Source: Eutreptiella sp. 'Long Island Sound 2002'
Taxonomy: Eukaryota; Protista; Euglenida
Direction of reading: 5' to 3'
Length of the DNA stretch: 64,000 nucleotides
Assembly (NCBI GenBank): GCA_964036045.1
Contig: OZ038378.1
Coordinates: forward strand, 187,860,001-187,924,000
Shown here: piece after piece, positions 1-2,620 of the stretch
Numbering within the stretch: the first letter of the stretch is position 1
Layout: every line of letters begins with the position of its first letter
The notes under the pieces: generated by a model
Seen by the model: the letters and a program-made list of their open reading frames with translations, nothing else
What the model was told of the DNA's origin: nothing
The model's database searches: none
Translations under genes and position numbers: made by a program

Positions 1-525
1 AAACCAACTGTTCCAAAGATTCGCACCACTGTGCAATAAATACGCAACAAGCGCCCCCCCGCCCGGAAGTGCAAAGGACCGCGCGTTGCAGCCGCCCGCT
101 GAGGTGGGCACCCGCAAGAACGTGGGACAAAAGCCCAAAAGTCGACGCAAAACGCCCAAGGCTCTCAGTGACGACGTCTTTGCGCATGAAATGCAGCAAG
201 AAGGCCACCAATCTTCATTCCGGGGAATATACGGGGGGTGGTTGTTCGTATCCATCTCAAATGATGGATACGATGTTCCATGGTTGAGTACATGTGGGTT
301 GGATCTTGCACAAACCGTGCGACGAATATGGAACGAGACCGAACCGGCGAAAATTGCCGACTACTGAGGATCCGACGCGATTCGTTTGGTGATCTCCGGC
401 CTGGAATCCACGATGTTCGGTGGTGAACAACGTTCGGTGGTGAACCGATAGTGTGTGGAGGGCACTAGACACGGTGGGAGGTGCAGTGGCCCAACTACGA
501 CACACATGAACGAGGGGGCGTCCAC

Positions 526-678
526 CTTTTCCGCGGGATCCATATCGAGGAGAGGCGGCGTACCCCGCAACCCGAGTTCGTTGGCCAAGAGGACGTACAA
601 AGAACCGGCATTCAAATCGTTTCCACAAAAGGAATGGTGGCATCGCTGGCCAACCGTCCGTATCGCTGGCGTGGAATA
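526..678 (-). CDS. Exon 2 of transglutaminase-elicitor-like gene (further 3' exons unresolved)
   Basis: Acceptor TGCAG ends at 679, phase 0. Translation YSTPAIRTVGQRC..NDLNAGSLYVLLANELGLRGTPPLLDMDPAEK matches the family pattern G-x-RC...DLNP(A/G)-x-FHxxLAN-x-LG...D. Putative donor AAG|GTGGAC at 525. Confidence 0.75.
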
Positions 679-1049
679 CTGCACATGGGGTGGGTGTGCA
701 TATGTCTCGGTTCATGTTCTCTGTGAATGTGACGCTCGAGGGGGATCAAAAAAGAGGAGGTGTATGCTTCCCCTTTTGCATTGACTACTTCCCGTTCACT
801 CTTTCTTTGTGTGACTGGTCATTTGGCTTGCTTTGGTCTTGAGTTCACACCATATCCCTTCGTTAGTGCATCGTGGTGCAGATATGCTCTCCGGGATGCC
901 CGCCTTTGGCTCGTGCGGTGAACGCGGCAAGTTTGCTTTGCAATTGAGTTGGACCTCCGTTGACGCAAAGATGGATAAGATAAACCCACGACGGAACGAT
1001 ACACGGCAAAATCGAACATCCTACCAACACTGCTAATGCGTTTTCATAC

Positions 1050-1580
1050 CACTCCCAAAAGGTATGTGAGCAACGCCTTCACGTCGCTGCTGCCGAAGGG
1101 GATTCGAAGCCCGTTGGAGGCGGTAAGAGTGACCGGGCCGGGCTCACGAAATAACATGGACGCTGGGGCCCAACCATGGCAAAGACCGAACCAATCCGGC
1201 ATGAATCGGGATGTGCGACGCCACTCGCTCTTAACCGTTGGGTAATCAAGGCGGTTATTGTAGATGTCAAACTTCTCGGCCGGCGACAATGTTCTCAAAC
1301 CACGAGGACCCATACGTCTCAGTTGGGACAACGAATGGAGGCGGTACCCGAAAGATTGTCCGACTTGCCAACGGTTGGCGATACCACCCTTGTTGCTCGG
1401 CCAATAGTCATCGGACCATGTTGCTCTCCTGGTTCTACCGGAGGACGGCAGAGCTGATAGCGTTTTGACAGGTGCATACCACCATTTGTTCGGATTGTTA
1501 AGCATATCCCACCGAGCACCGCTCACGTAGGCAATCCAAACGACGATGATAAGGAGGAAATGAGGGTGTAAATTCACCAT
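1050..1580 (-). CDS. Exon 1 of secreted transglutaminase-elicitor (GP42/TGase_elicitor-like) protein
   Basis: ATG at 1580 gives MVNLHPHFLLIIVVWIAYVSG (signal-peptide-like). It is followed by WSDDYWP..GGIANRW, LSPAEKFDI, WFGLCHGWAPAS and DVKALL, motifs I recognise from oomycete/bacterial GP42-type transglutaminases. Canonical donor GTATGA starts at 1049 (phase 0). Confidence 0.85.
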
Positions 1581-1605
1581 GGTTCTAGACACGAAAAGTT
1601 GCAAA
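1581..1605 (-). promoter_or_regulatory. Putative SL trans-splice acceptor, 4 nt upstream of the TGase ATG
   Basis: Minus strand reads TTTGCAACTTTTCGTGTCTAG|AACC-ATG: a pyrimidine tract, AG at 1586-1585, then 4 nt before the ATG. Confidence 0.55.
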
Positions 1606-2620
1606 GAATGCCACCCGCACACCTTGGAATTTTAGCACCATGTAGTGAGTGTGGTGCCTTGCACGCACGTTTGCTTTTGTCTTTCAACTTTTGCCGCAAA
1701 TCTCAATGCTTTGAAAAGCCACCACCAGAGAAACGTCCACCCCGACGCTCAGCAGCATGGCATGTGCATGACACCTACAACTCGCCAAAATCCCATGCCC
1801 ATATTGTATCACCACAAGGCCACTCGTGAGTCAGCGCTCATTTGCACGGTGTGCTCAGTAGGACCACTATTCATTGCGATTGAGTTTCCATTCCTTTAAA
1901 GGTGGTGCCATGGAACTTTTGGAGCGTACCTCAATGGCTCTTGGTTGTAGGTTCCACTTGCGTGGTGTTTGCCACACCGAGAATGATATGTTTATCTCCT
2001 TGGTCGTCTCACTTGAAGTGGTGTGCGCCAGTTTTGAAGCCTATGCCGCAAGTCCTTAGATGCTGTGAACGTGGCCATTTTTTCGAGACCATCGTTCGTC
2101 ACATTCCTAAAGGCACAAAAGTTTGCAATCGCAATGGCAAAATTACGCAATGGCAAAATTACGCATTGCGAGTTGGTTGTAGCCCGGAATTGCGGAAGCT
2201 TCTTTGGGAATCAACAACCGGTGCCCGTGCACTAAACATGGTTTGCTTGAAAAAAGGCCACAAATTGTGCCCGAACGGCTTCTCAAAAAAAAAAAAAAAC
2301 ACACACTTTGCAATCGCACTTTATAAAGTATACTTTGCAACTTGTTGCAAATTTTGTTGTCAAACAAAAGGCCAAAATTCGCTCATTGCCCCTAAAAACA
2401 CCCAAAAGATAGAAAAACGCCTTTTCTTTAAAGGCAACAAAGTTTTCAATCTCAATTGCAAAATTACACTTGCAAATTGGTTGTCTTTATCCCAGAATTG
2501 TGGAAGATTCATTGGGGATCAACGTTTGGTGGAACAGAACACGCAAGAGGTGAGATAAGGATACCACGATCACGAAAATGTCATTGTTCATTTGTGAGTT
2601 GGTGAGTCTCATAAGGGGAT

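Follow-up and report, generated by a model that had tools for sequence, protein, structure and literature searches.

The GP42 protein of Phytophthora sojae is the source of Pep-13. Outside oomycetes, homologs of GP42 have been said to exist in some marine Vibrio alone (PMC4915311). Its active site contains a 'CH' motif of adjacent Cys and His residues, and the partner of this His is either an Asp located on a non-core helix close by or a 'catalytically important asparagine' of a β-strand (PMC10318531). CHS triads are found in other active papain-like enzymes, where the Ser may act as the third polar residue (PMC10318531). Transglutaminase activity within the family is documented, in the literature consulted, only for oomycete GP42, and the papers naming the TGase_elicitor family that were found in a literature search all concern oomycetes, with none linking the family to Euglena.

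Here we describe a member of this family from Eutreptiella sp. 'Long Island Sound 2002', encoded at one end of an analysed stretch of 64,000 nucleotides (hereafter the window). We consider it likely that the window holds two of the seven exons of a euglenid nuclear gene for a secreted, GP42-fold, CUB-like and probable transglutaminase, belonging to a family of at least eleven loci placed within a protist clan. The window is located on a 201-Mb scaffold of a 2.28 Gb genome assembly comprising 2,317 contigs. The host is a Euglena-type euglenid, as the preliminary description had supposed, since a 24-nt query for the euglenid spliced leader, modelled on that of E. gracilis, gives 5,458 matches in the genome at ≤1 mismatch, compared to none for the reversed control.

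The ATG of the window gene is found at position 1580 on the minus strand, with MVNLHPH as the first encoded residues. The reading frame of exon 1 meets a stop directly past ...LLGV, at a donor (GTATGA) starting at 1049, while an acceptor AG at 680-679 opens the frame of exon 2 (YSTPAIRTVGQRCHHSFCGNDLNAGSLYVLLANELGLRGTPPLLDMDPAEK), after which comes GTGGAC at 525. To find the remaining exons, the 10-kb stretch adjoining the window start (L004; G000:C1:187850001-187860000) was taken, and exons 3 to 7 were located with natural proteins as guides, namely a single-frame paralog from the same genome (L001), a Euglena longa transcript product (P0003; EukProt EP00668) and P0001. The modelled gene leaves the window at its start and consists of seven exons totalling 1,566 nt (521 codons and a stop), separated by six introns, all GT-AG, in phases 0, 0, 1, 2, 0 and 1 (Table 1). 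The 521 residues of the predicted product compare with 522 in the complete E. longa product P0122, and include 12 Cys residues and, across exons 5 to 7, five N-X-S/T sequons. All tests on the window gene were run exon by exon, or on the naturally uninterrupted paralog L001. Each of the elements first read from the window, the signal-peptide-like start, WFGLCHGWAP, DVKALL and a second in-phase GT-AG exon with DMDPAEK, was recovered on the minus strand in its original place, and both the span of 526-1580 and the 228 amino acid length of the peptide (177 and 51 codons) are exact, although as a protein this peptide does not stand, as it amounts to less than half of the 521-residue product. The preliminary description had further placed the exon 2 donor precisely where the segment equivalent to Pep-13 should begin, and rightly so, because exon 3 opens with VWSYPITSY. 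It was likewise correct that VWNQP is missing from the window, the equivalent segment being VWSYP and lying beyond the window start.

Table 1. Features of the predicted GP42-type gene. Positions are those of the window, except for exons 3 to 7, which are given in scaffold coordinates (and in those of the adjoining stretch L004).
Feature	Position	Strand	Description
Candidate spliced-leader acceptor	1584..1600	minus	Pyrimidine-rich tract and AG (1585-1584), 4 nt 5′ of the ATG
Predicted signal peptide	1515..1580	minus	22 codons: MVNLHPH, 12-residue hydrophobic core FLLIIVVWIAYV, SGA; judged by eye
Exon 1	1050..1580	minus	531 nt, 177 codons; signal-peptide-like start, N-terminal domain, Cys-His active-site helix up to DVKALL
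Catalytic Cys and His of WFGLCHGWAP	Cys 1181-1179, His 1178-1176	minus	99% and 87% conserved over 191 relatives
Asp of FGSSD-VKALL	1083..1085	minus	First candidate third catalytic residue; 100% conserved; helix N-terminus in L001 model
Intron 1	679..1049	minus	371 nt, GT...AG, phase 0; in-frame stops inside
Exon 2	526..678	minus	153 nt, 51 codons; RC...C disulfide-type pair, NDLNAG helix, DMDPAEK at end
Asp of NDLNAG	616..618	minus	Second candidate third catalytic residue; 94% conserved; precedes helix H207-220 in L001 model
Intron 2, first 525 nt	1..525	minus	Donor GTGGAC at 525; whole intron 1,549 nt
Exon 3	G000:C1 187858976-187858823 (L004 8976-8823)		Opens with VWSYPITSY, ~1.5 kb past the window start
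Exon 4	G000:C1 187857550-187857304 (L004 7550-7304)		GGSYLPS...NPDFAW and arginine-rich linker
Exon 5	G000:C1 187856518-187856329 (L004 6518-6329)		Cys-rich; three N-X-S/T sequons
Exon 6	G000:C1 187855911-187855755 (L004 5911-5755)		
Exon 7	G000:C1 187855013-187854880 (L004 5013-4880)		TGA at end

The pyrimidine tract, the AG and the AACC-ATG context upstream of the window gene are also present in the copies of this gene designated C21 and C20, and as such a trans-splice acceptor in front of the ATG is plausible. No remnant of the spliced leader, which would have marked a retrocopy, was observed within 3 mismatches at the 5′ end of the intron-less paralog L001. Judged by the spliced leader-bearing genome in which it is found, its six predicted GT-AG introns and its paralogs in the host, the window gene truly belongs to a euglenid nuclear genome.

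The proposed membership of the GP42/TGase_elicitor family is upheld by exon 1 alone, which passes the Pfam profile PF16683 (Bitscore: 43.9; cut-off: 25; e-value: 1.8e-11) and matches the GP42 crystal chain 3TW5 (e-value: 1.7e-7), while a six-frame scan of the genome with the same profile gives 27.9 bits at the window locus. Exons 2 to 7 yielded nothing significant against Pfam when taken singly, as the pieces are too short, and exons 1 and 2 gave no match in a scan of NCBIfam. An AlphaFold2 model of L001 (mean pLDDT: 70.6; 11-row alignment) matches a single PDB entry at an e-value of ≤0.001, which is 3TW5 (e-value: 6.5e-14; probability: 1.00; TM: 0.50/0.58; identity: 18%), and the predicted structure of this intron-less paralog shows for the family the GP42 fold, which combines an elongated N-terminal domain with a papain-like core. 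The window gene resembles GP42 in its Pfam family, predicted fold, adjacent Cys-His motif, SSD and D-x-N segments, the Trp and Pro of the Pep-13 segment and a predicted secreted, cell-surface context. It differs in its low identity (~18%), in the Pep-13 segment itself, which reads VWSYPITSYSCSG as opposed to VWNQPVRGFKVYE in GP42, in a Ser in place of an otherwise invariant Asn and the lack of the His of 'FH', and in the addition of an arginine-rich linker, a Cys-rich segment, a CUB-like domain and six introns.

A secretory-type N-terminus, with a hydrophobic core between MVNLHPH and SGA, was recognized from the outset and is retained in the present model. The conserved domain begins two residues past the predicted signal peptide, with the first family-wide Trp (98% conserved) right after, so that a plastid transit peptide would not fit in between. 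At the other end of the protein, exons 6 and 7 match the C-terminal domain of euglenid and Acrasis proteins (e-values: 3e-6 to 5e-6), with exon 6 matching the C-terminal segment of P0122 and P0003 (e-value: 5e-6). The CUB profile (PF00431; threshold: 21.4 bits) finds no match in exons 5 to 7, nor in the euglenid proteins P0122 and P0001, but is passed by P0045 of Acrasis (23 bits) and by P0020 (41.6 bits), with which P0122 is collinear through the CUB domain. The domain is labelled 'CUB-like' because its homology is transitive, running from window exon 6 through P0122/P0003 to P0020. To our knowledge, CUB domains occur almost exclusively in extracellular proteins. The signal peptide, paired cysteines, sequons and CUB-like domain point to an extracellular protein, and we infer that the window product is secreted.

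The preliminary description had envisaged a lone acquisition, but the window gene is one of at least eleven loci on nine scaffolds identified through protein searches, where a Pfam scan of the genome had picked up three loci. One member of the family, at C22:16454141-16454935, is 100% identical to P0054 of an ENA assembly, which must therefore derive from the same species. The copies vary in their active sites. Canonical centers, in which C-H is combined with WNQP, are found in C15 and C6, while C-H is combined with WS(Y/F)P in the window gene (C1), C21 and C22, with WSYL in C20 and with WSHP in C14a. The Cys-His pair is replaced by C-D with WNFP in C4, which is the intron-less L001 and whose frame enters a ~60-bp satellite past the catalytic domain, by C-R with WSHP in C14b, and by S-S with VQHRP in C12, where both the Trp and Asn are also lost.

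By comparison against 191 full-length relatives, the window exons retain nearly all columns of the catalytic region that are conserved at ≥85%, including W, RW, SPAEK-D, W-G-C-H-G-W, EP, FGSSD-K-LL, RC...C, D-N-A-G, N, D, VW-P, GG and PDF-W. The Cys-His position is occupied by S-H in 3TW5. The preliminary description had left the catalytic Asp unassigned, and two candidates for the third catalytic residue are now listed in Table 1. In the Pep-13-equivalent VWSYPITSY, the Trp (99%) and Pro (97%) are kept. The Asn of VWNQP, present in 100% of the 191 aligned relatives, is, however, a Ser in the window copy. Furthermore, the His of NAGxFH (97% conserved) is a Tyr in the window copy and has been lost from each of the four full-length euglenid sequences under comparison, while Acrasis retains both this His and the Asn of VWNQP. 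The invariant Asn lies beside the first long strand and is probably the one meant in the description of the GP42 active site (PMC10318531); if so, the window subfamily would have a Cys-His-Ser-type arrangement. As Ser replaces the invariant Asn, the transglutaminase activity of the window copy is uncertain.

As such, the product may be secreted and folded without being a classical transglutaminase, acting instead, with a catalytic environment altered by this Ser and by the Tyr at the conserved His position, as a hydrolase or isopeptidase with a Cys-His-Ser-type center, or as a non-catalytic binding protein. We regard this as the less likely reading, but as one that deserves serious consideration, given that the Asn conserved in all 191 relatives is a Ser in five copies (C1, C21, C22, C20 and C14a), that the centers of C4 (C-D), C14b (C-R) and C12 (S-S) are degenerate, suggesting that the family is diversifying its active site, and that a catalytic Asn has been described in GP42 and CHS triads in papain-like enzymes (PMC10318531). 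Against this, the Cys, the His and both candidate Asp residues are retained in the window copy, dN/dS ratios of 0.22-0.44 point to constraint, and a Ser is itself an acceptable third polar residue in enzymes of the papain-like type.

Under the favored reading of a probable transglutaminase, the predicted 521-residue product would consist of a cleavable signal peptide and a GP42-fold papain-like domain with the adjacent Cys-His, followed by the arginine-rich linker, a Cys-rich glycosylation-type segment and the C-terminal CUB-like domain. It would catalyze an extracellular, probably Ca2+-dependent acyl transfer, in which a thioester is formed on Cys134 with the aid of His135 and is then attacked by the amine of a Lys. 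The resulting Gln-Lys bonds would tie together proteins that are secreted or at the surface, such as those of the mucilage, cyst or palmella envelope, with the CUB-like domain holding the substrate or matrix. This mechanism and role are drawn by analogy from GP42 alone.

The exon structure of the window gene finds its support in comparisons with related genes. The E. longa transcript product and L001 run uninterrupted and collinear across the exon 1/2 junction and the later junctions, and the continuity of the former across the splice junctions of the window gene supports the model, while exon 2 was matched by tblastn in L001, L002, P0001 and P0003. In the closest copies, C21, C22 and C20, all seven exons recur in unchanged order, with 80-95% nucleotide identity to the window gene (exon 1: 85-90%; exon 2: 84-89%). 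Their exons are open and GT/AG is kept at all six introns, including intron 4 within the linker, except that 1 nt may be deleted close to where exon 4 (linker) ends in C20. Between the window gene and C21, the exons are 84-95% identical and their lengths are equal or differ by multiples of three, while the introns differ 1.1- to 6-fold in length, with 3-52% of the longer intron matched. Intron 1 measures 426 nt in C21 and about 205 nt in C22 and C20, and the match between the window gene and C21 covers only 3% of the longer version, compared to 90% of the flanking exon. Introns 1 to 3 are furthermore found at identical positions in paralogs that are only 55-60% identical (C15, C6, C14a, C14b and C12), and are therefore older than the expansion of the family. 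Nei-Gojobori counts over the equal-length exons give dN/dS estimates of 0.22 (C22), 0.28 (C20) and 0.44 (C21), showing the window copy to be under purifying selection. The modelled splicing is a prediction with comparative support.

A search with exon 1 for transcript-derived proteins of this species that would span the exon 1/2 junction returned only genomic ORF calls, including P0131 of the window itself, and other members of the family are broken, with C20:981287 carrying two TAG stops and C21:23171476-23172000 being fragmented and stop-bearing. Together with the possible deletion in the linker of C20, this could suggest that the window copy is a pseudogene as well, a duplicate fallen silent or in decay within a large genome rich in repeats. 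We consider this improbable, as the seven exons of the window copy are open, all six of its introns are bounded by GT-AG, its indels relative to the paralogs are multiples of three and its dN/dS is below 0.5 against each of the three closest copies.

A word search with L001 identified 268 relatives, the best of which are the euglenid-like environmental sequences P0001 and P0002, P0003 of E. longa and the Acrasis kona protein 'Csmd3' (P0045). These are followed by many proteins of 440-530 amino acids encoded on mRNA-length contigs, several of them with a Pfam CUB domain, and subsequently by bacterial proteins of ~360 amino acids. The family had been presented as one of Phytophthora and of marine bacteria such as Vibrio, which is outdated: besides these protist relatives, a scan of prokaryotes, with each species represented by one genome, yielded at least 559 matching stretches, the best 80 loci of which belong mostly to Bdellovibrionota (Silvanigrellaceae, Oligoflexales, Bacteriovoracaceae and Peredibacter), with no Vibrio among these 80. 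A maximum likelihood tree (97 rows; 361 columns; LG+C20+F+G4 PMSF; support given as ultrafast bootstrap/SH-aLRT) was constructed after omission of three bacterial loci with an odd composition or extremely long branches, and of every other bacterial locus. The tree is unrooted and comprises no oomycete or Vibrio rows, and as such no direction of transfer between the protist clan and the Bdellovibrionota can be read from it. The ten euglenid rows are monophyletic (100/99) and fall within a 38-row clan (96/96) together with 28 long-form TGase+CUB rows, including that of Acrasis kona, with no named bacterial sequence inside the clan. The mRNA-length contigs, the CUB domain and the position in the tree suggest that this TGase+CUB clan is probably derived from protists.

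Among the known proteins close to that of the window gene are the E. longa products EP00668_P040447 and P041332 (P0122 and P0003), which share the 100/99 clade, the domain order, the length and a euglenid signature consisting of YSC after the VWNxP segment and a shortened loop. They differ in their moderate identity to exon 1 (about 54-60%) and in keeping the canonical IWNQP, and the best matches of the E. longa proteins in the genome, at 49-58%, include no close ortholog. 'Csmd3' of Acrasis kona (A0AAW2YTT7) and the other long proteins share the 96/96 clan, the order of TGase_elicitor and C-terminal CUB domains and a signal-peptide-like start with the euglenid proteins, but show only 38-44% identity, retain the conserved His and Asn, have a longer loop as in bacteria, and carry a CUB domain that passes Pfam where the euglenid ones do not. 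The Bdellovibrionota proteins are 35-40% identical across the whole catalytic domain, with all of the conserved motifs present, but they are ~360 amino acids long, have lipoprotein-type signals, lack a CUB-like domain and introns and are separated from the euglenid genes by the 96/96 branch.

Of the independent or shared acquisition contemplated in the preliminary description, neither a recent transfer from bacteria nor one shared with oomycetes is favored by these data. A single acquisition of GP42 shared by euglenids and oomycetes would account for the Pfam family, fold and CH motif they have in common, but is highly unlikely, as GP42 gives just 31-34 bits and 18% identity to these proteins, where the Bdellovibrionota and protist relatives give about 190-300 bits, and as no oomycete sequence occurs among the 120 best matches to L001, although the latter does not constitute a rooted test. 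The idea of a recent capture of the gene from bacteria by euglenids alone, or of a bacterial contaminant, has in its favor that the closest named non-protist relatives are bacterial (mostly Bdellovibrionota, at 35-40% identity), but can scarcely be entertained for a gene on a 201-Mb scaffold of a spliced leader-bearing genome, with six spliceosomal-type introns, the first three at positions common to paralogs of 55-60% identity, and a place in a 38-row clan (96/96) that is free of named bacterial sequences, with a CUB-type architecture shared with Acrasis kona. In the phylogeny, which covers bacterial but no oomycete homologs, the euglenid genes are not nested within a bacterial lineage but group with the Acrasis kona clan. 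The placement of the clan and the distance of GP42 thus render recent bacterial transfer, contamination and an acquisition shared with oomycetes unlikely, while the old shared introns, the expansion of the family, the architecture common with a heterolobosean and the support for the clan favor a long residence in euglenids and the protist clan.

The advance made here is one of annotation, in that the window gene belongs, on sequence grounds, to a lineage-specific family within the known GP42 protein family. The statement that GP42 homologs are restricted to oomycetes and some marine Vibrio (PMC4915311) can nevertheless be corrected, as the family is abundant in Bdellovibrionota, forms an intron-bearing multigene family in euglenids and has a relative in the heterolobosean Acrasis. 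This wider distribution also weakens a simple story of transfer from Vibrio to oomycetes. For euglenid biology, a candidate is gained for an enzyme predicted to cross-link proteins of the mucilage, cyst or surface, while the active-site variants among the paralogs may be used to dissect the adjacent Cys-His center. We tentatively suggest, as a possibility that falls somewhat short of being probable, that euglenids and other protists, Discoba included, possess an old, intron-bearing and expanding family of secreted TGase+CUB proteins with a varying catalytic center, which forms a eukaryotic clan beside a large radiation of the family in the predatory Bdellovibrionota. If true, the copies would provide a natural series (C-H with Asn, C-H with Ser, C-D, C-R and S-S) with which to probe the 'CH' site, and would offer a handle on whether cross-linking enzymes take part in the construction or remodelling of the euglenid extracellular coat.

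At alignment column 758, all four of the full-length euglenid sequences compared have Y, F, L or M instead of the histidine of the NAGxFH helix, a residue that is 97% conserved across the TGase_elicitor family (191 full-length relatives) and is also found in GP42 and Acrasis kona. Other euglenid paralogues that were read likewise carry F or Y at this position, and the loss of this histidine looks like a lineage-wide change in euglenids.

Changes at the catalytic centre are found in two paralogues. The C12 scaffold paralogue encodes GLSSGW, with serine at both the Cys and His positions, and VQHRP in place of VWNQP, while the C14b paralogue encodes GLCRGW. As their exons remain open despite the degenerate catalytic centre, both are candidate pseudoenzymes on the basis of their sequences. 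A Cys-Asp pair replaces Cys-His in the C4 scaffold paralogue (L001), the catalytic domain of which lacks introns at all three intron positions. Its reading frame continues directly into a tandem satellite, which stands in the place of the missing linker and CUB-like exons, and no spliced leader remnant was found upstream of the ORF within three mismatches. Two family fragments, the second located upstream of the intact copy on C21 at a distance of ~15 kb, are probably dead copies, judging by their interrupted frames.

Features in the Eutreptiella genome (G000) and the window
Feature	Coordinates	Strand	Remark
C20 fragment	G000:C20:981287-981661		In-frame TAG/TGA stops or split frames
C21 fragment	G000:C21:23171476-23172000		In-frame TAG/TGA stops or split frames
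C12 paralogue (L114)	G000:C12:3735125-3741400		
C14b paralogue (L115)	G000:C14:57297664-57298188		
C4 paralogue (L001)	G000:C4:23509878-23513258	minus	ORF 1060-2520
Satellite	L001, about 60 to 1330		Tandem, ~60-bp unit
Arginine-rich linker, window's gene	L004 (G000:C1:187850001-187860000) 7420-7304 and 6518-6440		Exons 4 and 5
Direct repeat copies	Window 2090-2235 and 2440-2535		~110-bp unit, diverged

Among bacteria, the family is very abundant in the predatory Bdellovibrionota (most of the 80 best loci, from at least 559 matching stretches), often with several copies in a single genome bin, such as the five loci of one Silvanigrellaceae bin among these 80. No mention of this abundance was found in the literature searched on the family.

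Upstream of the window's gene, at a distance of approximately 500 bp, an A-rich stretch separates the two copies of a unit (…ttgcaatcgcaat…aaaattacgca…ggttgt…gaattgcggaag…ggaatcaac…) that is probably a dispersed repeat. The gene itself encodes an arginine-rich linker, an unusual feature in a secreted protein. Arginine and lysine make up 30% of exon 4, and the linker, which contains PRR(T/V)VR-like repeats, is kept across four close copies with indels in multiples of three. One possible role for the linker is to offer several dibasic sites for processing.
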